Below are positions 18,990 through 45,829 of a stretch of DNA of 64,000 bases, piece by piece. The DNA lies in the IMG/VR virus record IMGVR_UViG_3300024520_000047, positions 1-64,000 of that record; one strand, written 5' to 3'. Position 1 is the stretch's first letter. Each line of letters starts with the position of its first letter. The position numbers were made by a program, and so were the translations under genes. Below the pieces are notes generated by a model. The model was not told the origin of the DNA. It worked only from the letters and a program-made list of their open reading frames with translations, and did no database searches.

Positions 18990-19062
18990 AGCGGAAGGAT
19001 AGGATTTGAACCTCCGTCCCCATACTGGTAGTATGGTGCTTTACCAATTAAGCTACTCCCGC
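18990..19062 (-). tRNA. tRNA-Gly, anticodon ACC (atypical; one-nt bulge in T-stem; CCA not encoded)
   Basis: GCGGGAG acceptor/CTTCCGC + U73; D-arm GCTT/AAGC; anticodon arm CCATA-CTACCAG-TATGG; T-loop TTCAAAT. Confidence 0.8.
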
Positions 19063-19066
19063 TTAT

Positions 19067-23000: not shown

Positions 23001-26000
23001 ACTAAATCCGGGTATATCAACAGAACCGTGTTTGAATATTTTTTCCCATCCGCTTTCTTCCGCCTCTACTTCAAAGTAAGAGGGATAAATTTTAACTGGA
23101 GTTTTAACCTGTGCATAATCTCTTTTTTCATCGACCTCACCTGCAGCTTCACCCCAGTTATCCACCGCCCATCTTGCATATTTGCTCGCTATTACCCAAT
23201 CCTCCATGGTACGAGCGGGTATCGAAAATAATTTCATTATATCATTATATCTCTCTTCTAAGGCACGGGGTAAATTAGCGGCATCACTCTCCCCAATCAT
23301 CTCTAAGTCCTCTGAGGTAAACTCTTGGGCTAACTTATTCAATAACTTGACTTCCATGTTGGTGAAGGGAGTAAAGTCATAGTATTGGTCGTCATCATAG
23401 AATCCTTTATCTTTACCAAATTCCATTTTTTCTTCGTCTAACTGTAAACCTCCACGGTCTATCTTGCTCAATGCATCTAAATTCCCAAAGGAAGGATGGT
23501 CGGTTATCTTATCTTTTTTACTTTGTCTCATTACATCCCATACTCTAGGCTTCATCTTCATGTGATTACTCACCATATACCCTATCTCTTCTGGGTCACC
23601 ACCTAAACTCTCAATGAATTCACTATACTCATTCACTAACTGGGTGGAAACTTTTTCATGACCATGTGCGGTAGGTTGTCCTGTTTTAGGATTTACACCT
23701 AATGTGGCTAACTTACCTAGGTCATGAAAATATGCTGACAAAATTAAATTTATATTCTCAGGTTGTTCAGCAAACGCTCGGTTGGTTACCGTAATAATAT
23801 GTTTAAGTACATTTCCTTCTGGATGCCATTCAGGATTTTGTTTGGCCTTCCATTGGTCCATTAATATTTGTTGTAATGGTCTGGGTGAAGCATTGTATAA
23901 TTCTTTAAAGTTAGTCACTGATTCCCCTAATAAATCGATGTCATCATCCCACATCCCTTTATTTTTCTCCACCAGAATCCATGTATCGGTGTCGGGCATT
24001 AGATATCTCATGATTGCCTTATTTGAAAGAACACCGGGGCGGTCGGGGTAAGACACATCTTTCATGGGTCTATTAATACCATACCAATATTGGTCCCGCT
24101 TGGGTGTAGTGGTAACCCTATAAGGGACAAACAGTTCAGGAACTTGGTCGGGTATTTCTCCTTCTTTATCTTTAACATCTATTACTATTATCTCATCTCC
24201 ACTTTCTAAGGGTGGGTTTACTTTTTGTTGGTCTATGTTCTCGGTGAGACTTGCTGGGTCTGTAGGTTTTGGTGGGCCGAAATTTCCCTCATCATCTTTT
24301 GCCGATGGTTCTTTACTTTGAGGGACCAATTCATACAAGTCATCATATAAGATGTCATTAAAATATTCTTCACTAATATCTGGGTACCAATAACCATCAA
24401 AGTATTTTCCATCTACCTCTAAGTGGTCTCCCCGTTTACCCTCATTATAGTCATCTCCTCGTCCAAACTCTTCTATCATAATCTCCCCAAAAAGTTGGTC
24501 TGGAGTAAGACGTGCCATGTCTCTCATTACATCTTCCAAAGGTCGACTAGCATAATCTTCATGAAACTGAAAGAAATCTGTATTATCCCAATCGTCATCA
24601 CTTATCCACCTTTTTAAGTCACTTTCTATTATCCACGAATAACTTCCATTATTATTATCTCTTACCCATTTTCCTGTTCCGTCGAACCAGTCCTCTATCT
24701 TATCCCGAATATCGTCAAAGATGGCACGTTTGGTTGCATCTTCCTGTTCTATACTATAGGCGCGGGTAATCTTATTTCTAATTTCATCTATCTCACTCTC
24801 TTTTTCGGCAGCAATATCATCCTCAAAATCATTGTCTACATGACCCTCCAATAGTCTGCCGGCCACTTCTTTATCTTTAATCCCAAGAATTTCCATAATC
24901 ATTTTCCAACTTCCATCATCGAGATTATCTAACATCCCCTCATAAAATTCGTTATGGTCATACCATCCATCCCAATCCCATGCGTCCTCACCACACAGAT
25001 ATTTCCGTATGAGTTCTTCATGATTGTCATCATCAAATAATCGAGCTAAATCATCACAATCCCATAATGATGTTACCGGAATGGGTGCTTGAGTATTCAT
25101 TATGTATCTTTTGAGTAACATGGTGACACCATCTCCTTGGATGCCTTGCATCCCTAACAGTTTAAGGTCTTCCCAACTTACCCCATCTTGGTCCCATTTT
25201 TTATAAAGATATTTAACTGCATTTTCAGGATAATCTTTCATTATCCATTCTTTGTCTTCATCTTCCATTACTGAATCAAAAGGCCATCCTCCATGAAATA
25301 AATCTAATTGTTGTTCTTCTTTAATAACTTCTACCGAAGTAGTATCGTTGAGGGTATCTCTGTCTGGATAAAGAGCATCATTAAGGAGTTCTAAGTGATA
25401 TTCCACCTCCGCATCGTGGTCTGCCCAATTAATAACCATACCCTCTTCATCAAAATCAAAATCACCTTCTAATTGGTACTCGGTGGTATCATAATATTGA
25501 CTCATTAATTCTACTGTCTCCTCATTTGCGTTCACGGTATCAGTTAACTCATCAATGGTATTAAGATATTCCAGTTCTACAGTACTCAAATATTCTGCTT
25601 GTAACTCTTCATAATAATACTGGTCTACATATTTATCTTCCATTTGGTCACAGTCACACTTTCCTTCATCTTTTTCATCCTCCGTACATTCCCTATACTC
25701 ATCTTTTTCATCATCATAAAACTCAGTCCACTGTATACATTCACAGTCCTCCTCACTTAATTCACCATAAAAATGACCCCCACTTTGGAGACACTCTTCT
25801 AATATTTCTTCTGACTCAGCCTCTTCAGCATAAAACTCTACAGTATAGTAATAGATATTCGGTAGAGGTTCCCATAATAAATTCGTTATATTCCAATCAC
25901 TAAAGCCCCCACCTTCTTTAATTATCAACCATAAGGTCGCAGCTATCTGTTTTCCATCACTACTACTAAAAATTCCCCCCACATCTAGATATTTCCGTAA

Positions 26001-27368
26001 AGTATTGTAAAAACTATCGAAGTGGTATAAACTTTCATTTAAACGATGAGCGGTTCTTATTAGAGAAATTATCTTTGGGGTTATCTCTCCCCCATCATTG
26101 TGAAATTCGTATTCTTCCTTTAAATATCTTTTAGGTGTGGTGTCTTTGGAATAAACCCATGTATAATTGCCGGGATACAAACTTTTGGGGTCTACATTTA
26201 ATTCGTAAAGAGTATCTAAAGTTATGTCATCCCAATTTTCAATTTTAATCCTTTCCTTCCCTACATCCTCATATTCTGTGGGGGTAAGAAGAGTATAGTA
26301 GGTGTTACGGTTTTCATCGACACTTACATTAACCACCATATAAGGGGTAAGTAATTCTGGTACGTCTTGCCACTCGATATCATCATCTCTATTATACCAT
26401 CCCATCTGACCTGCGTCCCACCTATATCCAGCATTCGCAGCGAGTTCCTCTAGACCACCACCTACTACATAACCCTGTGTTTCTAATACATCAGTTAGTT
26501 CTTCATCCGACAGGTAATGACTACGAAACCCTTTACGGTCAATAACCACTATCTTATCCCCTACTTCTAGTTTAGGGTTATGTCTCCATAATTGGTGTTG
26601 GTTTCTAATATTTTCTTCCTTTAGGGTTGGTGGTAGGGGGTCATTCGTTCCTAGGTCCAATAAAGCGTAATGACCATTCTTCATTCCCAAATTACTAATT
26701 CCTATATCCAACCATCGTCTTCCAGTTGCTTCAATTTCTTTACGAATATTAACAATGTCGTCATACACTTGTCGGCATTCGGGAGACCCATCTACTGGTG
26801 GGTGAATAAGAGCTTTTCCTGTAGGGTCCGAATAAAAATCTACATAAATAGGATTGTCTTCTCTACAACAACATCTAGTGAACATCTTTTCTTCAGGTGT
26901 GGTTGGGTGGGTTAGGAGTTCTAAAACAATAATATACGCTTGACTACTATCTGATGTATAATAAGGAGTCTTAAAAGGGGCGGTAGCAAATACATTTGCT
27001 ACATATTCATTTTGTTTACCTTTTAAACTTTGTGCTTGACGGTGTTCAGCTTCATCTCCAGTAATTTTAATTACTTTATCATCATCAAGAAGTGCAGCAA
27101 TACCATTTCCACCACTAATAATATCAATAACGTCACCTAAATTATTATCAGTAATGTAATCCTTTAAAACCTTCTTAGGGTCAGCACTAAATTTAACTTT
27201 TCCGTGTTCAGCGTCTATTATATATTCTTCCGTATCCGGTACATCAATAGACTGATAAATGTCTTTACGTAACTCAGGGTCATTTCTAAAAGACTGGTCT
27301 ATCGCAACCTGTAATCCCGGGTCTAATTGTTTGGGTGATTCTTGTAATATATTAGGAGATTGTCTCAT
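19995..27368 (-). CDS. giant acidic modular polyprotein P2 (2457 aa): protein-kinase-like, HD hydrolase, 5 A-repeats, 2 B-repeats, Cys-rich module; LxE linkers
   Basis: Kinase motifs SGGNG/VIK/DIGISN/DLG; HD motifs WHPEG...HDLGK...HGHE; repeats visible in translation. Confidence 0.9.
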   Translation of the reverse strand: MRQSPNILQESPKQLDPGLQVAIDQSFRNDPELRKDIYQSIDVPDTEEYIIDAEHGKVKFSADPKKVLKDYITDNNLGDVIDIISGGNGIAALLDDDKVIKITGDEAEHRQAQSLKGKQNEYVANVFATAPFKTPYYTSDSSQAYIIVLELLTHPTTPEEKMFTRCCCREDNPIYVDFYSDPTGKALIHPPVDGSPECRQVYDDIVNIRKEIEATGRRWLDIGISNLGMKNGHYALLDLGTNDPLPPTLKEENIRNQHQLWRHNPKLEVGDKIVVIDRKGFRSHYLSDEELTDVLETQGYVVGGGLEELAANAGYRWDAGQMGWYNRDDDIEWQDVPELLTPYMVVNVSVDENRNTYYTLLTPTEYEDVGKERIKIENWDDITLDTLYELNVDPKSLYPGNYTWVYSKDTTPKRYLKEEYEFHNDGGEITPKIISLIRTAHRLNESLYHFDSFYNTLRKYLDVGGIFSSSDGKQIAATLWLIIKEGGGFSDWNITNLLWEPLPNIYYYTVEFYAEEAESEEILEECLQSGGHFYGELSEEDCECIQWTEFYDDEKDEYRECTEDEKDEGKCDCDQMEDKYVDQYYYEELQAEYLSTVELEYLNTIDELTDTVNANEETVELMSQYYDTTEYQLEGDFDFDEEGMVINWADHDAEVEYHLELLNDALYPDRDTLNDTTSVEVIKEEQQLDLFHGGWPFDSVMEDEDKEWIMKDYPENAVKYLYKKWDQDGVSWEDLKLLGMQGIQGDGVTMLLKRYIMNTQAPIPVTSLWDCDDLARLFDDDNHEELIRKYLCGEDAWDWDGWYDHNEFYEGMLDNLDDGSWKMIMEILGIKDKEVAGRLLEGHVDNDFEDDIAAEKESEIDEIRNKITRAYSIEQEDATKRAIFDDIRDKIEDWFDGTGKWVRDNNNGSYSWIIESDLKRWISDDDWDNTDFFQFHEDYASRPLEDVMRDMARLTPDQLFGEIMIEEFGRGDDYNEGKRGDHLEVDGKYFDGYWYPDISEEYFNDILYDDLYELVPQSKEPSAKDDEGNFGPPKPTDPASLTENIDQQKVNPPLESGDEIIVIDVKDKEGEIPDQVPELFVPYRVTTTPKRDQYWYGINRPMKDVSYPDRPGVLSNKAIMRYLMPDTDTWILVEKNKGMWDDDIDLLGESVTNFKELYNASPRPLQQILMDQWKAKQNPEWHPEGNVLKHIITVTNRAFAEQPENINLILSAYFHDLGKLATLGVNPKTGQPTAHGHEKVSTQLVNEYSEFIESLGGDPEEIGYMVSNHMKMKPRVWDVMRQSKKDKITDHPSFGNLDALSKIDRGGLQLDEEKMEFGKDKGFYDDDQYYDFTPFTNMEVKLLNKLAQEFTSEDLEMIGESDAANLPRALEERYNDIMKLFSIPARTMEDWVIASKYARWAVDNWGEAAGEVDEKRDYAQVKTPVKIYPSYFEVEAEESGWEKIFKHGSVDIPGFSSQDVTDRATADWYDWGGEMETYDYGDWESDGWEIESTTHRETIKEQSENLPLKKFLHQNYTQEVFRIYKKLALAAKLLLTSYEDSYTEGGVRNFKYGGFGGGEGGRGEIGLLADKIETAQMELYDLWGTINEDLYKLGLIDTTNIGPPDERDFISYNRLRGLTPNPVVKAWARQIIERIDNMELVALTGEWEGNDKGVGKEVEIWGGDTPYILREQKETQLSPELEVGDSIRVIDIDRERERMKGRGEAERPEILTPYIVVEKESAGHKAQWPWRYTLLPADKHQDYLNGDYMVGRGTAKLLYPWIYQWIKVHKKPITEQKEKLNPSLNIGDVIRVVDVDKDTRYKQSAGSGMYRTRSRGELHGEDTFPTIMETYYVTSPEPVNTEQITFGNEPTFRNLYWNMLPITGENIEWDRGNRILTTNDKWIMVKKHVSNIPQEIEARQKEIDASGKNITSRRLNEQDAESGLEDDDLYVEYGPFTALEVKILNTIVREFTFDELKAIATRTFKTDIQRQVTSRYEDVMKLFGEPNSGEGSAQIWTIISKYARWALENRHEADDGDYGQIKNARKEYPSEYEVEAEESGWEQVFKRGSANVTAFGATDAEEKSREDFYGWGGEMHTYEHGDYESDDWEITDAYHFNTLKEQKIDTTKIPKEEISPPLKVGDKIFIWDLEMDPAPPGTTTLTIPNTTVGIVVHVYEGNASEEPRGDMFRGGIKYEIDTYDGHLGLYQGVEDYDYYADDGGGRDKWIIIRNTPLTEAIIPQLPEEERPNIPNYIRRLLIIGRFEYKGGWGKNSQTFLLYMTPTGKIVDIAKSGNLSNIPFQIGDTINIFDLRDFEKKSDYTLTMGGKLRGDMTEEVNRHLQAAQKDFLIKRRFFESFDKMDLTAFIKVRSQHVTTAQLVEKRKLIFDFLSEVKNKEMTNENFYSHFLIGGKDWIDTYSTVLKKDSGLLSEDGDKIKNLIWDTTIHSLKNKNKEVTLREAKRNIIPTANRLINLWKETL

Positions 27369-37777: not shown

Positions 37778-38533
37778 TTATTTTTCAGCTCTTTTTGGGT
37801 AGGGTTTTATTAAATGACTAATTTGTTTCTCTAAATATTTCTTGTTAGTTTTACTTCCACGGAAATAAAAATATCTGTGTTTATTATATTGGGGTATAAA
37901 CTCCGCTTCAGGAAAAGCTTTTAAAATGTCTTCCTTTTTCTGAGACCCTAATTTACTTCTCATCGCGCGAGCACCATATATCTTCCCATTAATCTTAACA
38001 CCAAACCTGTCTTTAGGTTTACTTTTAACTTTAGGGTTGGACTCCCTCATACTACCAATATAAGTAAAATTACATGACTGGTATATTGTTCCAATCTCTC
38101 CTGCCGCTGGGTCAATTGTGGCAGTTATAACATCATAGTGGAATGGAAGTTGTTTAATGCTTTCCATAATTAATTTACTACCACTATGTGGATGTGCCCA
38201 ATGAACACAGACACCTCTACTAAGAAGTATAATTCTTCCAGTATAGTTATATTTGTCCCATTTACCCAAATTCTCAATGTAGTCTTTGGAAAATACAGTT
38301 ACTCCCGCACACACCCCATCATAAAAAATACCAAAAAAATAAAGAGAAATAGCAGGCATACAACCCAACCATTCATACTCTTCTACTATCTGAGTAGCTA
38401 ATTTTCTATCTATAGGTTTAACAATAGCATTAGAGATGTCTCTATTAATTGGTGGTATTTCCCCCTCTAATTCTTTCTGCTCCCTAATCTTTCGTTGGTG
38501 GGCTTTTCCTATGGGCAATATAATATTAGACAT
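37778..38533 (-). CDS. Mom-like GNAT-fold putative DNA-modification protein
   Basis: ILLSRGVC..., DPAAGEIGTIYQSCNFTYIG, KHRYFYF resemble Mu Mom D...G.G.VYQASNF.Y.G and HRY. Confidence 0.7.
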   Translation of the reverse strand: MSNIILPIGKAHQRKIREQKELEGEIPPINRDISNAIVKPIDRKLATQIVEEYEWLGCMPAISLYFFGIFYDGVCAGVTVFSKDYIENLGKWDKYNYTGRIILLSRGVCVHWAHPHSGSKLIMESIKQLPFHYDVITATIDPAAGEIGTIYQSCNFTYIGSMRESNPKVKSKPKDRFGVKINGKIYGARAMRSKLGSQKKEDILKAFPEAEFIPQYNKHRYFYFRGSKTNKKYLEKQISHLIKPYPKRAEK

Positions 38534-38906
38534 TGTTTTTACTGAGAACTTTTTTAAGGTACTTATGTTTACCTACAAATTTAATATAAGGAATTTTCCA
38601 TTCGTTACTAGTGTCACATCTACAAACATTTTCCCATATACTCCGCACTATACTACTCCTTCTATCATCCAACCCCCAGATATTTTTCATTTGTAATAAA
38701 TGATTCATTCCTTCTTGGTACAAATAACTCCCCCCATCTTTCCATATTACATCCTTGGATGGTTCCTTATCCTTCAGTTGGTAAAGTTTATTGGTGACAT
38801 AATTGAAAAGGATTTCATTACGGTGAAACGTATCATAGTTAGCGGTATCATATTCACCACCCTGATTAGGATAATTTTTATAGGGATTAAGGATTTTTAA
38901 TTGCAT
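38526..38906 (-). CDS. hypothetical protein
   Basis: 126-aa ORF. Confidence 0.55.
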   Translation of the reverse strand: MQLKILNPYKNYPNQGGEYDTANYDTFHRNEILFNYVTNKLYQLKDKEPSKDVIWKDGGSYLYQEGMNHLLQMKNIWGLDDRRSSIVRSIWENVCRCDTSNEWKIPYIKFVGKHKYLKKVLSKNNV

Positions 38907-38935
38907 AATACCAATTATACGAAATTTTAAGTAAT

Positions 38936-38965
38936 AAAAAAACCCCTAACCGAAATTAGGGGTTT
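38936..38965 (-). terminator. intrinsic terminator
   Basis: AAACCCCTAA-TTTCGG-TTAGGGGTTT followed by T-run on minus strand. Confidence 0.85.
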
Positions 38966-38970
38966 AAGAC

Positions 38971-39209
38971 TGGAAGGGGGTCGTTTTACATTTGATTGTT
39001 TGTATAAAGAGTGCTGTAGCCTTCCATTTTCTTTCAATATAATAAGTATCGGAATCAATGTTCCATCCTTTTATTTACTTAGAGGTGGGAACTAAGAAGT
39101 TTTTTACTAGTCCTTACGCTAGAAGTCTCTCAATTTTATTTGTTCATAAAGGTGTTTTAACTCCGTGTTTCACCTCTCTCTTTTATATAAAGAGTGCCGT
39201 AACGATTCC
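38971..39209 (-). ncRNA. two candidate stem-closed small RNAs downstream of TROVE/vWA-like gene
   Basis: Closing stems GGAATCG/TGATTCC (39051-39209) and TGGAAGG/CCTTCCA (38971-39026), each followed by TACRGCACTCTTTATA. Confidence 0.55.
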
Positions 39210-39221
39210 TTGGTTACTTAA

Positions 39222-40655
39222 TTATATTGTGATGGCTTCATATCGAGGTGAGTCGATAGTCTCCATCATTACTTCATAAGGTGTAATATTCTTACAACTT
39301 AAAATGCTCCTCATGATTGAAGGGGAGAAACCTGACACAAGTGCCGTTCCGCTCTCGTCGAAACGAGTTGGACAATTATCGTTCCTACTCTGGATATTCC
39401 AGTAAACGATATCGGGTATTGTGTACCCAGCTTTCTCATACATTCCTTTAATCATTTGTTGTGCAGTTGGGTTCCACTCAGAGACAGAGTCCCAGTGAGA
39501 GGAGGTTGCTTCGTCAAACTCCATGTCCGAAAGAATAAGAAGTTTGGTAGGCATTTCATCCACAGGAACGTCATGTTTAACTGCTTGGTCTAGAATGAGT
39601 TTAAAGGCCTTTTGAAGGTCAGTACTCATTGCCCAGTCTGCACTTTTCAGTTGACTTAACCTGTCAACTAGAGGTCCGTTTAATACCTGTAGACTAGGAT
39701 TACTGGAGAAAGTAAGGAACGTATCTTTAAATACACCTTCATTTCTTTCAGAAATATACAGTCCCAAAGAGACTGCTACATCCATACAAGTAAGATTGGG
39801 GTTGTTCCCCGCACTACATCCCATGGACCCAGATACATCTACTATAGGTAGTATACGGTCGGTTGAATCTTCCATATAATTAGGAAGAGACTCCCACTGT
39901 GCTTGTGACACAGTATTATCACCATTGAACTGAAGAGATTTAACCACATCATAAGGGTAGAGAGCTCCAGCGTTAACTGTAGTTTCTCCGTTCTCAAGAG
40001 CTAGTTTGAATTCCTCATACCTTTTGGTATCATTCTTTAAGAATGCTCGTTGGTACCTAGATGAGGCCAAGGATGGTAGTTTCGAATAATCGATACTAGA
40101 CCAATCCTTAGAACACATAGGTGTTTCCACCACATTGGTTAACCTAACCAATAACTTTCGATATTGTTTAGGTGTAACCCCTAAGTACTTACGAATGATA
40201 TTAGCTTTCACACCTTTACGTGGCATCCATTTTGCACATAACCCATCTTCGTTAAGAAGAGCGAGACGTACACATTCTAAAGCTACTTCCCAGCAGGTTG
40301 TAGACTTTGCTAATGTCAGAATATCATCCCATCTCCCATATTCACTAATTAAGTGAACATTTTTTTTCAGGGTGGTAGGATGTGTTTCTGCTAACCATGT
40401 AATGATATCCCTAAAGATTTGTCTTTCCCCGGCACCTCCACGGACATCACGTGCCCAGAAGAGAATTTTCATAGCGGTAAGACTATCTTCAGTGAAAGCC
40501 TTGGAAAACTTGGAAATTAATCTTTGTTTATCCTGTCCTCGTAATGCTCCAACTTGGAAAAACAGATTAACACACTCATTCAATGTAGTAGAATTTGTGG
40601 TCATTCCGTTCTCGGTTAGAGTATCTTGGGTTTGTATGGCTTCAACTAAATTCAT
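39222..40655 (-). CDS. DUF2828-family TROVE-like + vWA domain protein
   Basis: TENG, LFWARDVRGGAGER, EYGRWDD, AKWMPRK, MIDAS DVSGSM, LILSDMEFD, YWN. Confidence 0.9.
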   Translation of the reverse strand: MNLVEAIQTQDTLTENGMTTNSTTLNECVNLFFQVGALRGQDKQRLISKFSKAFTEDSLTAMKILFWARDVRGGAGERQIFRDIITWLAETHPTTLKKNVHLISEYGRWDDILTLAKSTTCWEVALECVRLALLNEDGLCAKWMPRKGVKANIIRKYLGVTPKQYRKLLVRLTNVVETPMCSKDWSSIDYSKLPSLASSRYQRAFLKNDTKRYEEFKLALENGETTVNAGALYPYDVVKSLQFNGDNTVSQAQWESLPNYMEDSTDRILPIVDVSGSMGCSAGNNPNLTCMDVAVSLGLYISERNEGVFKDTFLTFSSNPSLQVLNGPLVDRLSQLKSADWAMSTDLQKAFKLILDQAVKHDVPVDEMPTKLLILSDMEFDEATSSHWDSVSEWNPTAQQMIKGMYEKAGYTIPDIVYWNIQSRNDNCPTRFDESGTALVSGFSPSIMRSILSCKNITPYEVMMETIDSPRYEAITI

Positions 40656-40733
40656 AGGTAATAATATTTTTAATTTCTTTTAATTTTTAAAACGTTCTTA
40701 AAGTATACGAAAAAAAGTGGGGATGTCAACACC

Positions 40734-40982: not shown

Positions 40983-41342
40983 TTAGTTCGGTAAACCCAC
41001 TCTTTCCCAGTCAAATTTTTCAAATCCTTCATTACGTTTTAGTGAGACTGAATGTGCTTTAAGTTTATTTTCTTCATCGTTAATAAGAACTCTTCCAGTA
41101 TCAGCATACCCCATAAGTAAAATATCAAATGGAATACCTAGACGTGTAAGTTCCCTTTCGGTTGTCTCTCTTAAGTTTTCTCTTCGTCCTGTTATTAGAA
41201 TAATTCTACACCCCATAGTCTCCCACTTATTAAGTTTTTCGACTACTCCGGGTAATATATCATGAGAGGCGGCAACTATACCCGCGGTATCTCTTTTATA
41301 AAAAACTATAGTCCCATCTATATCACAAATTATTGTCTTCAT
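40983..41342 (-). CDS. HAD-superfamily phosphatase-like protein
   Basis: ICDIDGT (DxD), ITGR, LINDE. Confidence 0.85.
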   Translation of the reverse strand: MKTIICDIDGTIVFYKRDTAGIVAASHDILPGVVEKLNKWETMGCRIILITGRRENLRETTERELTRLGIPFDILLMGYADTGRVLINDEENKLKAHSVSLKRNEGFEKFDWERVGLPN

Positions 41343-42777: not shown

Positions 42778-43854
42778 TCAAACTTCTATCGTTCTAAATT
42801 TCTTCTCCACATTAACTAAACTTTCAAATATGATGTGGGTTAATTGGTAAGGGTCTGCGTTACTGGCAGGTCTTCGGTCTTCCAAATATCCTTTCCATTC
42901 GTTAGTAACTGTCGAAACTGGTATTCTAATACTTGCACCTCTATCGGAAACACCGTAACTAAAGGTATCGATATGTTGAGTTTCATGGGCACCTGTCAAT
43001 CTTTTATTATTTCCTGAACCATAAACTTCAATATGCTTTTGATGTTTTTTACCAAAATCTTCACAAATAGAATAAAATAAATTTTTACCACCCAATTCTC
43101 TCATCAAATCACTAGAAAAATTTACATGTAACCCAGAACCGTTCCAATCTCCTTCAATGGGTTTAGGTGTCAAGTCTACAATTACATCATATCTTTCTGT
43201 TATTCTATATAATAGAAATCTAGACAACCATAATTCATCCGCTGCTTTTTTTGCTCCTTCTGCAAATAATTGATACTCCCATTGTCCAATCATTACTTCT
43301 GCATTTACACCCGTTATATTGAGGCCAGCTTCCAAGCATACTTGTAAATGTTCTTCTACTATATCTCTCCCTGACACATTTTTAGACCCTATACCACAAT
43401 AATACTCACCTTGTGGAGAGGGATAACCCTCCGTGGGGAACCCCAAAGGTGTACCTTTTGTTGTTAAAACATATTCTTGTTCTAGTCCAAACCAATATTG
43501 GTTATCATCATTTAAAAAATGTCTTTTATTTGTTTTGTGTGGAGTACCATCAGAATTTAAAACCTCACACATTACCAAAAAAGCATCTACCCTTTGCGGG
43601 TCCATTATTGCTCTTACTGGTTGTAATAAACAATCAGAATGGTTACCTTCAGCTTGTAGGGTAGAACTACCATCAAAACTCCAAATAGGTAATTCACTAG
43701 GTGTAGGAATAATTCTACCGTTAGTGGCAATCGTTCTTTTACTCTGTATAGTAGGACTTTCAAGGGGGTCATACTCCCAAATCTTAGTTTTACTACGTAG
43801 ACTCGGTTCTGGTGTTGTACCATCCAACCAAATATACTCTAATTTTACTTTCAT
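42778..43854 (-). CDS. glnII: glutamine synthetase type II
   Basis: EYIWLDG...LRSKT, WSFDGSST.QAEG..SD, FGLEQEY, NAEVMIGQWEYQ, DWNGSGLHVNFS, DRGASIRIP, YLEDRRPASNADPY. Confidence 0.92.
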   Translation of the reverse strand: MKVKLEYIWLDGTTPEPSLRSKTKIWEYDPLESPTIQSKRTIATNGRIIPTPSELPIWSFDGSSTLQAEGNHSDCLLQPVRAIMDPQRVDAFLVMCEVLNSDGTPHKTNKRHFLNDDNQYWFGLEQEYVLTTKGTPLGFPTEGYPSPQGEYYCGIGSKNVSGRDIVEEHLQVCLEAGLNITGVNAEVMIGQWEYQLFAEGAKKAADELWLSRFLLYRITERYDVIVDLTPKPIEGDWNGSGLHVNFSSDLMRELGGKNLFYSICEDFGKKHQKHIEVYGSGNNKRLTGAHETQHIDTFSYGVSDRGASIRIPVSTVTNEWKGYLEDRRPASNADPYQLTHIIFESLVNVEKKFRTIEV

Positions 43855-43909: not shown

Positions 43910-45829
43910 TTAAAAAGGTAAGTCATCTAACGCATAATTTTCTCTTTTCATTTCTTCAGACACAAACCCATTTTCTTCATTCCACACCAACTTTTCTTTT
44001 TTTCCACTAACTTTATTAGAAATATGAATAATAGGATAAGCATATGGATTATGTTCTACATATTCCATCAACCGTCTTATTAATATCTTTTGTACAGATT
44101 GCCAGTCTTCACTTGGTGGTTGGTTAAATTTCATTTGACTTTGGATGTGGACAAAGGAGTTAGAAGAAGGGGAAATAACAAAACCCAACGAAGTAGCCCC
44201 ATTTGGAGCAAATTCCGAAGTCATTCTCTCTTCCCCCTTTCTTATGGAAATAATTAAACTTTTATAACGGTCTACATAACTTCTTACACAGTGGTGTTGG
44301 TGTTGTCCTTCATCAAAATAATCTAAGTCACTTTTAAGAATTTTAACTTCGTAGTTTTGTGTGGGTTTACCCACCCTTTTCCCTATACGAATATTTTGCT
44401 CTATAGCAGTCACAAACTCTTTTTCATACTGGTACACAGTTTCCTTATTTCTTTCACAGAGATGAATAAGATTAGACCACTCTAGGTGTTCATCCTCAAA
44501 TTGTTTTAAAGTTTTGGCTTTAATTCGTTTTTTAATTCCAAACCCCCATAATTTATTTTTAATCCTAAAATGGTCATACAATTGGTTTAAAAAAGAACTA
44601 TTACTTACATGCTTTAATACTTTGATTAAATTAAGTTTTTCATAATTAGTTAAAGTATAGTCGTACATTTCCTCAACCCCCACTATAGATGACTCATATT
44701 TTATATCGATATTCGCATTGGTAGTCTTAATAAAAGATAAGGGTAGTTGTTTAACATGTCTTTCACCGAATATTTCTTCTAACTCTTTTAAGTCAGTTAA
44801 ATTTAATGTACCACACGTATTTAAGAGTTTTATATAATATTTTCCTTTTAATTTTTTTTTATGAAGAATAGTTCTAACTAAATTCATATTACACTTACGT
44901 AGATATCTAATGCCGGGATAATGAGCGATAAGGTATTGATAATAATCGTTAGGGACTTTAATTTTCCATTGTTTTATAAACCACTTCATTAATGCGTCAC
45001 CTAATCCTGTCCCAAATCCTTTTTTAAAGGATATGTTTACTTGGAGTTCTTCTTTTAATTTTTGTTGTAAGTTAATTAAGAAAAGTTTTAAATCTTCACT
45101 GAATGTATCGGGTGCCATCGTACCCCCATCAAACCACGTTAATTTATTTAAAATATTAACATCAGTCAAAGGATTTAAAGTAGAAACAATTTTTTGAAAA
45201 TCATTTTTAGTTGTAGTTGTATTCCTTTTTCTACTACCAAATTTTGAGGTAGTAATAAAAAAATTCTTAGTTTTAAAATTAAAGGTAATGTGGATATCTT
45301 TACTATGTTTAGCAAAATATCTATGACCGACCTGTCTACTTTTAGCAAATTTAAAAATAGATAATTTAAGTTTATCTTTATTTTTTTCTAATACAATAGT
45401 AGTTCTATTAACTGAAGTGCTGTTGAAGACGTTTACACCTTCTTTAAGCCACGTTTCTTCATCTACTATTTGGGGGTTTAATATATTTCTATTGGGTGTA
45501 AAATAACCAACTTCAACATGTTTAGTATTAAAATCAGTCTTAGAACTAGGAATTTTTTCTATATAAGGTGTAGCCGTTCTTCCCTCATGTTTTTTATTGT
45601 CTAACGTTAAAAAATCAAACGGGTCATTCTCTTCAGTTTCTTCTGGAAGTATTGGATTGATTTCATTATAATTATGATGCTCTTTCAGGTCAAAAACCTC
45701 CATTTTATATTTTAAAATTAGGTCCCACTCTCTTTTTTTATCACTCTTTTTCTTCTTCATACCACAAAAATAACAAAAAAATAAAATAAAAACAACTAAT
45801 TTATTGTCGTATATTGTTCTTTTTTCCAC
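43910..45829 (-). CDS. PcfJ-like domain protein (true start probably MKKKKS)
   Basis: C-terminal DYFDEGQHQHHCVRSY...ISIRKGEERMTSEF. Confidence 0.7.
   Translation of the reverse strand: MEKRTIYDNKLVVFILFFCYFCGMKKKKSDKKREWDLILKYKMEVFDLKEHHNYNEINPILPEETEENDPFDFLTLDNKKHEGRTATPYIEKIPSSKTDFNTKHVEVGYFTPNRNILNPQIVDEETWLKEGVNVFNSTSVNRTTIVLEKNKDKLKLSIFKFAKSRQVGHRYFAKHSKDIHITFNFKTKNFFITTSKFGSRKRNTTTTKNDFQKIVSTLNPLTDVNILNKLTWFDGGTMAPDTFSEDLKLFLINLQQKLKEELQVNISFKKGFGTGLGDALMKWFIKQWKIKVPNDYYQYLIAHYPGIRYLRKCNMNLVRTILHKKKLKGKYYIKLLNTCGTLNLTDLKELEEIFGERHVKQLPLSFIKTTNANIDIKYESSIVGVEEMYDYTLTNYEKLNLIKVLKHVSNSSFLNQLYDHFRIKNKLWGFGIKKRIKAKTLKQFEDEHLEWSNLIHLCERNKETVYQYEKEFVTAIEQNIRIGKRVGKPTQNYEVKILKSDLDYFDEGQHQHHCVRSYVDRYKSLIISIRKGEERMTSEFAPNGATSLGFVISPSSNSFVHIQSQMKFNQPPSEDWQSVQKILIRRLMEYVEHNPYAYPIIHISNKVSGKKEKLVWNEENGFVSEEMKRENYALDDLPF

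Follow-up and report, generated by a model that had tools for sequence, protein, structure and literature searches.

A phage locus that pairs a Ro60-like DUF2828 protein with two putative Y-RNA-like modules

A locus in the virus record IMGVR_UViG_3300024520_000047 (IMG/VR) is likely to encode a phage Ro60-type ribonucleoprotein (RNP), made of a divergent Ro60-like protein and RNA modules analogous to Y RNAs within one transcription unit. Ro60/Y-RNA particles are known in animals, some bacteria and a few phages. The stretch analysed here, referred to as the window, comprises positions 1 to 64,000 (64,000 nucleotides) of this marine phage record, which spans 246 kb and is 77% complete. Between 38933 and 40729, the minus strand of the window contains a candidate promoter, an open reading frame (ORF) of 477 amino acids, two RNA units and an intrinsic terminator, in this order; all features of the locus named below lie on this strand. 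Judging from sequence comparison, the modules found beside DUF2828 genes in this and other phages probably represent a new class of Y RNA. A previous sequence-only reading of the window had proposed a Ro-like RNP with its own ligand RNAs, and this proposal gains support from the predicted Ro60 fold of the protein, the linkage of the modules to the gene, their covariation and the presence of YrlA-type cores in related modules.

Phage Ro60 proteins with adjacent Y RNAs are already established (PMC4201824, PMC12135203), and the Ro-likeness of the DUF2828 family is already contained in annotations and in the hypothesis proposed for Listeria phage CKA15 (PMC12282133). Searches for Y RNAs in bacteria and phages have hitherto been confined to the surroundings of TROVE-annotated proteins (PMC4201824). 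No description of the module was found in the literature, where mentions of DUF2828 are unrelated, and no Rfam family matches it. The new element would be a second Ro60-like protein lineage with its own class of Y-like RNAs, as suggested by the comparative data and the structural model. DUF2828 is far more widespread in phages, with 711 records, and its adjacent Y-like RNAs carry a simple and sharply conserved signature.

The gene product (39222-40655) contains an N-terminal DUF2828 (1.8e-36) and a C-terminal DUF7788 domain (1.9e-49) in Pfam, and matches PHROG 850, annotated as 'RNA-binding protein'. The DUF2828 part is helical, while DUF7788 is a vWA domain with a MIDAS (metal ion-dependent adhesion site) of the DxSxS type, D273-x-S275-x-S277, in the motif DVSGSM; these three residues are invariant in 40 sequences. 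A protein sequence search against the PDB returned a chance match only, and NCBIfam yielded nothing useful. An AlphaFold2 model was calculated from 40 homologues (predicted local distance difference test, pLDDT, 82; predicted template modelling score, pTM, 0.77) and compared with the PDB by Foldseek. The top 12 matches are all Ro60/TROVE proteins aligned over their full length, with about 500-555 aligned columns, E-values from 5e-9 to 8e-5, a probability of 1.00 and template modelling (TM) scores of 0.46-0.62. They include Ro60 of Thermus phage phiLo (9kop, 9l5y), which is the best match, Xenopus Ro60 (2i91, 1yvr, 1yvp), human Ro60 (9nep, 9nen) and Deinococcus Rsr (2nvo); five of them (9kop, 9l5y, 2i91, 1yvr and 2nvo) have E-values between 5e-9 and 1e-6. 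Isolated vWA domains rank three orders of magnitude lower. Thus, the predicted model shows the overall architecture of solved Ro60 structures, in which a vWA domain comes after an alpha-helical repeat domain. Because this fold matches Ro60 over its full length, while the Pfam TROVE model fails and BLASTP aligns the MIDAS alone, the model identifies the protein as a remote, structure-level relative of Ro60 outside the Pfam TROVE family.

By tblastn, the DUF2828 family was detected in 711 phage records, including Felix O1-like coliphages and Salmonella phages, Listeria phages of the A511/P100 type, cluster L mycobacteriophages, KVP40-like vibriophages and phages of Campylobacter, Bacillus, Enterococcus and Staphylococcus. 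The homologues of cluster L mycobacteriophages carry the annotation 'Ro-like RNA binding protein', and the proteins of coliphage wV8, Listeria phage A511 (gp178) and mycobacteriophage Whirlwind all combine DUF2828 with DUF7788. Two published observations provide leads on function: the Listeria homologue CKA15_055 was found in purified virions with 57% coverage (PMC12282133), and the cluster L1 homologue LeBron gp53 is moderately toxic when overexpressed in M. smegmatis (PMC13148394).

The stop codon and the terminator are separated by about 255 nt without a credible ORF, and this segment contains both RNA units. Unit 1, the long Y-RNA-like module (39044-39219), is matched by the covariance model R2, and unit 2, the short one (38968-39027), by models R1 and R2 (see below). 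In unit 1, an outer stem (39215-39219 with 39044-39048) is followed by an asymmetric internal loop (ACCAA/GA) and by the terminal stem P1, formed by GGAAUCG (39203-39209) and UGAUUCC (39051-39057). The motif UACGGCAC is located at 39194-39201, and the insert of about 135 nt contains hairpins and a probable pseudoknot. R2 matches this unit at 39048-39210 with 21.8 bits (E 4e-4, 3.5 kb searched with filters off). P1 of unit 2 pairs UGGAAGG (39020-39026) with CCUUCCA (38971-38977); it is accompanied by the motif UACAGCAC at 39011-39018, an A/U-rich loop of about 30 nt and the invariant unpaired G at 38970. Unit 2 scores 70.8 bits with R1 (E 2e-16) and 51.8 bits with R2 (E 1.6e-11), and is the sole significant R2 match in the 246-kb phage record, located beside the DUF2828 gene. 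Both window modules share an AAG/AUG-stem, UACNGCAC and a 3' G.

The sequence-only reading had placed both stems at these very positions and had described a 16-nt motif common to both units. This motif, TACRGCACTCTTTATA, occurs in exactly two copies in the 64-kb window (39186-39201 and 39003-39018), against 0.01 matches expected by chance, and two copies were seen in none of 100 shuffled sequences. Its statement that the window RNAs lack a T-arm was also correct, as neither ARAGORN (tRNA, transfer-messenger RNA) nor the Rfam tRNA model gave a match at 38900-39260, and the terminator predicted behind the RNA units was borne out by an 11-bp stem (38940-38965) followed by a U run. One detail of unit 1 has to be revised. 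The long-range pairing AGAGGTG/CACCTCT is present in the window sequence, but it is not retained in a relative that is 96% identical (L084), whose sequence differs at this place. The 'GTAA-loop hairpin' corresponds to a CUAG/CUAG stem of 4 bp (39119-39122 paired to 39107-39110) that closes a loop of 8 nt.

Within the insert of unit 1, a local hairpin (39150-39175) pairs AGGUG (39171-39175) with CACCU (39150-39154) around a 16-nt loop. It aligns with a GGUGG/CCACC hairpin of the relatives (helix 3, 92.7% paired) and is retained in L084. Part of its loop, GGAGUU (39159-39164), can pair with GACUUC (39122-39127), which would generate a pseudoknot across 39122-39164. In an alignment of 11 sequences this helix 4 is 87.9% paired, shows changes on both sides in three of six pairs and occurs in the variants UAUUCC/GGAAUA, UACCCC/GGGGUA, UACUCC/GGAGUA and AAUCCC/GGGAUU. 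As the loop of a conserved hairpin covaries with a downstream segment in the group of relatives with about 70% identity, the pseudoknot is probable, with support that is moderate because the alignment comprises 11 sequences. The region 39078-39122 contains two small hairpins, the CUAG/CUAG stem mentioned above and CUUAG/CUAAG (39092-39096 with 39078-39082). The latter is retained: L084 carries CUUAGG/CCUAAG, and the relatives with about 70% identity carry (A)CUUAG/CUAAG(U) (helix 5, 87.5% paired). Folding of the whole 296-nt region was weakly informative (z = -1.79), and its minimum free energy structure uses long-range pairing unsupported by comparison. Rfam searches of a 451-nt region at E<=10 returned only chance matches driven by the terminator, e.g. 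RyhB and STnc370.

Searches of the locus with megablast and blastn against 50,697 phage records revealed no DNA similarity to cultured phages, and relatives were therefore reached via the protein. In this way, 80 related loci with 47-72% identity, mostly marine, were collected from IMG/VR, and closer relatives were obtained from metagenome contigs. All relatives with at least 56% identity share the layout of the window 3' of the stop codon, i.e. a long unit, a short unit and a terminator. The 96% identical L084 contains a compensatory change from G-C to A-U in P1 of unit 1, and L018 of the ~70% group shows further compensatory changes in the outer stem and P1. Across the alignment of 11 sequences, the five helices of unit 1 are 91% paired, compared with 32-53% for slid partners.

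A scan for the 16-mer with mismatches and a crude stem-finder script both proved too loose. The stem-finder reported 56 upstream 'modules' and, in controls, 20-25, and covariance models took its place. Aligning the short modules with MAFFT split their 3' strand, and model R1 was consequently seeded on a trimmed subset (A5) of ten short units; R2 was rebuilt from the R1 matches. Such a model of DUF2828 flanks had been named in the sequence-only reading as a check, with a lack of the motif beside homologous genes counting towards refutation. The reverse was observed, the stem and motif being present beside DUF2828 in 50 of 63 sources: R2 detects 91 modules at E<=0.5 in 438 kb of related loci, and all 91 share the strand of their DUF2828 gene. 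The module opens with A-A-G at the start of a 7-bp stem, continues with one to three variable bases, the single-stranded sequence U-W-C-N-G-C-A-A and a variable insert, and ends with a closing strand terminating in C-U and an unpaired G. Over 88 distinct modules, P1 is 95.7% paired (slid controls, 34-46%), with changes on both sides at all seven pairs. Compensatory cells number 175, compared with 45 +/- 7 in column shuffles, and none of 500 shuffles attained 175. The single-stranded bases are nearly invariant (C 87/88, G 88/88, C 87/87, A 86/87), as is the 3' G (87/88). Module length ranges from 36 to 271 nt, and the insert is therefore free to vary. These comparisons assign both window units to one conserved RNA type.

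The last base of the invariant motif (39194 and 39011) is C (GCAC) in both window units and A in 77 of 87 modules. L084 carries A at this position in both units, and metatranscriptome variants show A at 39194. The concerted change to C could reflect co-adaptation with the protein or gene conversion. One marine clade (L032 4010-4261, L034 4061-4303, L027 4294-4411) shows the reversed order, with the short module first; its second module contains a GC-richer insert of 120-250 nt, and a small hairpin whose strands covary (GGUAC/GUACC vs GAUAC/GUAUC) carries ACAGCAA in its loop.

The position of the modules relative to the gene is variable, while the linkage to the DUF2828 gene is constant. They are located downstream in relatives with at least 56% identity and upstream in more distant ones; below about 52% identity, only a terminator follows the stop codon, and the modules form upstream arrays of two to four. 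An ORF separates the gene from the modules in L027 and L031. The same modules were detected in cultured phages of five host genera by R2 with filters off. Listeria phage A511 contains three modules directly upstream of the gene, coliphage wV8 four modules between tRNA genes downstream of it, Campylobacter phage F355 two modules upstream, mycobacteriophage Whirlwind three downstream, and Cronobacter phage S13 and Citrobacter phage Ci1 one module each. Among the 18 best matches in cultured phages (E<1), one weak match (E 0.26) is on the minus strand. As phages amenable to genetics carry the same modules, with E. coli/Salmonella, Listeria, Mycobacterium smegmatis and Campylobacter as hosts, the role of a phage Ro-type RNP in infection, the contacts of the invariant bases and the differences between effector domains are accessible to experiment. 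Annotators can in addition label several hundred unannotated intergenic stretches beside 'RNA-binding protein' genes.

In S13 (L002 4356-4599) and Ci1 (L001 4385-4619), two over-long tRNA-like genes of 113-121 nt, annotated as tRNA-OTHER/pseudo, are located about 500 nt 3' of DUF2828. At the position of the anticodon arm they carry an insert composed of the closing strand, UGA, a short loop, the AAG-strand and UAUUCAGCA, an arrangement suggestive of a Y-module that has been circularly permuted and sits within a tRNA body. Behind these genes comes a YrlA-like module of the standard form (L002 4614-4752, L001 4635-4769).

Both window units conform to the general scheme of a Y RNA, in which a stem formed by the RNA ends encloses a loop or effector part and the RNA is encoded beside a Ro gene on the same strand. 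The canonical Ro-binding stem, a bulged helix of the GGUCCGA/CGAA type, is absent from the window modules. Within many of the longer modules in relatives, a T-arm, a hairpin and a D-arm succeed one another as is usual in YrlA. The core of the Rfam YrlA model (RF02553, model positions 23-89) matches L059 with 43.5 bits (E 2e-6), Whirlwind with 38.3 bits (E 5e-7) and L063 with 26.7 bits; the stem part of the model is never matched in the relatives, and no score reaches the gathering threshold of 69 bits. Searching the whole record of the window phage with YrlA gave a 12-bit chance match only. A tRNA-like domain is present in modules of L059, L063, L070, L077, L079, L082, wV8, Whirlwind, S13 and Ci1, and each phage tends to carry one tRNA-like module and one to three plain ones. 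This YrlA-type core ties the modules to the Y RNAs.

The known systems resemble the locus in different respects. Bacterial Rsr binds YrlA and YrlB, both of which are processed from one precursor (PMC4201824). The combination of one tRNA-like module with plain ones in the relatives corresponds to the YrlA/YrlB arrangement of bacteria (PMC4201824), and also to mycobacteriophage Bxz1, where a tRNA-like Y RNA and simple ones stand in tandem beside the Ro gene (gp220). In these systems, the Y RNAs are processed from one precursor, and the site for the protein is located in the terminal stem that the two RNA ends build. In contrast to YrlA and Bxz1, only the tRNA-like core is matched, and this in relatives, while the long unit of the window contains a different, probably pseudoknotted insert. 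Bxz1 encodes three tandem Y RNAs upstream of its TROVE Ro60 gene, with the signature stem, GGCCGA and CGGUUA on the 5' side and CAYCAUGUCU and stem on the 3' side. Since R2 finds no match at the Y RNAs of this canonical Ro60, the module is specific to the DUF2828 lineage and distinct from the known Ro site.

Ro60 of phage phiLo is a phage-encoded, ring-type protein with HEAT repeats and a vWA domain, and its two Y-like RNAs, Yrl1 and Yrl2, adjoin the gene on the same strand. The phiLo protein binds both RNAs and host polynucleotide phosphorylase (PNPase) (PMC12135203). In the description of this system, however, the protein counts as a canonical homolog of Ro60, and the RNAs are characterised by a stem-bulge-stem structure with a 'CGAA' motif (PMC12135203). 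The window protein, by comparison, is of the DUF2828/DUF7788 type and about 14% identical to it in the structural alignment, and the window RNAs, known here from their sequence, follow the AAG-stem / UWCNGCAA / CUG scheme and are located downstream of the gene.

The P100-like Listeria phage CKA15 encodes a member of the same protein family as A511 gp178 (DUF2828+DUF7788). Its authors reported an HHpred match of CKA15_055 to Rsr and suggested that abundant non-coding RNAs nearby might be Y RNAs (PMC12282133). However, they left these RNAs undefined, and the region they named, 26,236-26,727, corresponds to a ROOL RNA match in A511. Three modules of the type described here are located at 25,283-25,574 of CKA15, directly upstream of the gene. 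In A511, a full-length ROOL (RF03087; 87.5 bits, E 9e-18, just below the gathering score) is found at L093 1477-2028 (record ~26196-26747), within an interval upstream of the Ro-like gene that has no annotation and corresponds to CKA15_059-061. This region accounts for up to 67% of phage transcripts and was tentatively discussed as Y RNA (PMC12282133). A511 also contains a tRNA (L093 2317-2387, Rfam 52.5 bits) within a coding sequence called at 2281-2613 ('ribosome associated inhibitor A; zinc finger domain'), a call that is doubtful.

The locus is represented in marine metatranscriptome assemblies. Contigs from at least four studies match it at 90-100% identity and cover 38984-40651, i.e. the gene and unit 1, and the sequence flanking this span is represented in no contig. 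One run contains contigs identical to the window over 39028-39323, and the boundary between units 1 and 2, at 39028-39030, is where three contigs from two studies terminate. This pattern fits transcription of the unit and possibly a processing site at 39028-39030.

A working model can be proposed in which a single transcription unit, starting from a promoter near 40729, would comprise the gene, two tandem non-coding RNA modules and the terminator. Each module would be a Y-RNA analogue whose ends form the 7-bp stem, and this stem, together with the single-stranded U-W-C-N-G-C-A-A and the unpaired 3' G, would be the docking site for the protein of the adjacent gene. The variable insert between the stem strands would serve as the effector or decoy part, represented by an unstructured A/U-rich loop in unit 2, by a pseudoknotted multi-hairpin domain in unit 1 and by a tRNA mimic, as in YrlA, in other phages. 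By analogy with Rsr/YrlA/PNPase (PMC4201824) and phiLo Ro60/Yrl/PNPase (PMC12135203), the RNAs would either gate the RNA-binding surface or cavity of the protein or tether host RNA-processing enzymes such as PNPase during infection. The same analogy would account for binding of the RNAs by the protein, their processing into separate small RNAs of ~60 and ~170 nt, and their downstream activity.

Several observations weigh against this model of a Ro60-type RNP. At E<=0.01, Pfam recognises only DUF2828 and DUF7788 in the protein and neither TROVE (PF05731) nor vWA_Ro60 (PF25045), both of which are matched by the control Bxz1 gp220, a canonical phage Ro60; the BLASTP alignment with gp220 is limited to the MIDAS stretch DVSGSMG. 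A tRNA-like domain is absent from the window RNAs, which the Rfam models YrlA and Y_RNA do not recognise (38850-39300, E<=10), and neither RtcB nor a PF09414 RNA ligase is matched in the 77% complete phage record. Covariance-model alignments favour the structure of the model itself, although the covariation margin is nonetheless large. The expression evidence consists of assembled contigs, from which neither RNA ends nor strand nor abundance can be read, and DNA can be present in RNA libraries. Binding of the modules by the DUF2828 protein is a step that we infer by analogy. Finally, no separate promoter for the RNAs was found, and they could therefore stay in the 3' untranslated region (UTR) of the mRNA.

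This last point leads to the main rival, cis action, in which the modules are parts of the DUF2828 mRNA and the protein, or a nuclease, binds its own UTR for autogenous control of translation or of the stability of the mRNA. Although unlikely overall, it is consistent with the 3' UTR location of the window modules and with two types of arrangement in other phages. In five distant loci (L067 2444-2479, L069 2443-2479, L071 2443-2478, L077 2440-2479, L081 2444-2480), a minimal module of 36-40 nt, consisting of a stem and an 18-20-nt loop with ACAGCAA, ends a few bases 5' of the Shine-Dalgarno sequence of the DUF2828 gene; these loci also contain larger modules further upstream. In vibriophage KVP40, a weak module match (L003 2455-2500, 17.9 bits) spans the start of the DUF2828 gene, with the Shine-Dalgarno sequence in the loop and the ATG in the 3' strand of the stem, an arrangement that suggests autoregulation of translation. 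A short distance upstream, a T-arm-like hairpin is located in the spacer of a TTTACA/TATAAT promoter. Control in cis cannot be reconciled with modules that are hundreds of bases to more than 1 kb away, beyond tRNA genes (wV8, L077) or an ORF (L027, L031), with arrays of three to four modules, and with complete YrlA-like tRNA mimics, which are stable processed RNAs in bacteria (PMC4201824). As it still requires binding between protein and module, it is a variant of the RNP model, and both may be true.

Still less probable is that the modules work independently of the neighbouring protein, for example as signals for RNase processing of tRNA-type transcription units or as small RNAs directed against host transcripts. 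Many phages carry modules in or beside tRNA arrays, and the invariant single-stranded bases could be the site of a nuclease or host factor. Yet the sole significant copy in the window phage is located beside DUF2828, 20 kb from the one tRNA of the window; the linkage to the gene extends across phages of Proteobacteria, Firmicutes, Actinobacteria and Campylobacter whose neighbourhoods are otherwise unrelated; and Bxz1, with its canonical TROVE Ro60 and many tRNAs, has no module. That the two units resemble each other by chance or through a recent, functionless local duplication could be entertained from the window alone, which offers two short stems, one 16-nt repeat and the modest z-score given above. 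However, the motif pair is far beyond chance, and modules with compensatory changes occur at protein identities down to 33-50%. The distribution of the modules and the covariation of P1 refute this explanation for practical purposes, leaving it a negligible probability.

A broader interpretation is more speculative than the RNP model itself and is given somewhat less than an even chance: the AAG-stem / UWCNGCAA / CUG element could serve a second phage-wide, Ro60-like lineage (DUF2828) as a dedicated element for recognition, employed as a portable handle in four ways. It would occur in simple Y-like RNAs, in tRNA mimics, in circularly permuted form at the anticodon-arm position of tRNA-like genes (S13, Ci1) and as an operator at the ribosome-binding site of the mRNA for the protein itself (KVP40-like phages and several marine phages). 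If true, a new RNP system would exist in standard laboratory phages, namely Felix O1-like phages, A511/P100, cluster L mycobacteriophages and Campylobacter Fletcherviruses, with effector domains, e.g. the pseudoknotted insert of unit 1, that have no described counterpart.

A role in RNA repair has no local support because the phage record lacks RtcB and RNA ligase matches. An AAA_33 kinase is encoded 110 kb away, and a small HAD phosphatase immediately upstream of the gene (40983-41342, minus strand) weakly resembles the phosphatase domain of PNKP, below the Pfam cut-off; a local repair operon is thus unsupported in the window phage. In a 73% identical relative (L086 43-1201), an AAA_33 kinase and an HAD protein occupy the same upstream position, which hints at a polynucleotide kinase-phosphatase split in two. 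In A511, by contrast, a ligase of the RtcB type is encoded 1.3 kb downstream of the Ro-like gene.

The boundaries of the locus are marked by a sigma-70-like promoter candidate at 40702-40729 (TTGACA, 16 nt, TATACT; 11 of 12 consensus positions) and by the terminator at 38933-38965. The former is located about 45 nt 5' of the start codon and is the top promoter-like match in the scanned region, as judged by its consensus match alone; the metatranscriptome contigs begin within the gene, at or below 40651. The terminator combines its GC-rich 11-bp hairpin and UUCG-type loop with the U run UUUUUUUAUU at the end of the unit, and related loci also contain a terminator after the last module. The standard genetic code is sufficient for the locus. 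Neighbouring genes in the window encode a Mom-family DNA-modification protein (37778-38533), a glutamine-synthetase-like protein (42778-43854) and a PcfJ-like protein (43910-45829), all on the minus strand. The sole tRNA of the window, identified by ARAGORN as tRNA-Gly with the anticodon ACC, is located on the same strand at 18991-19063.

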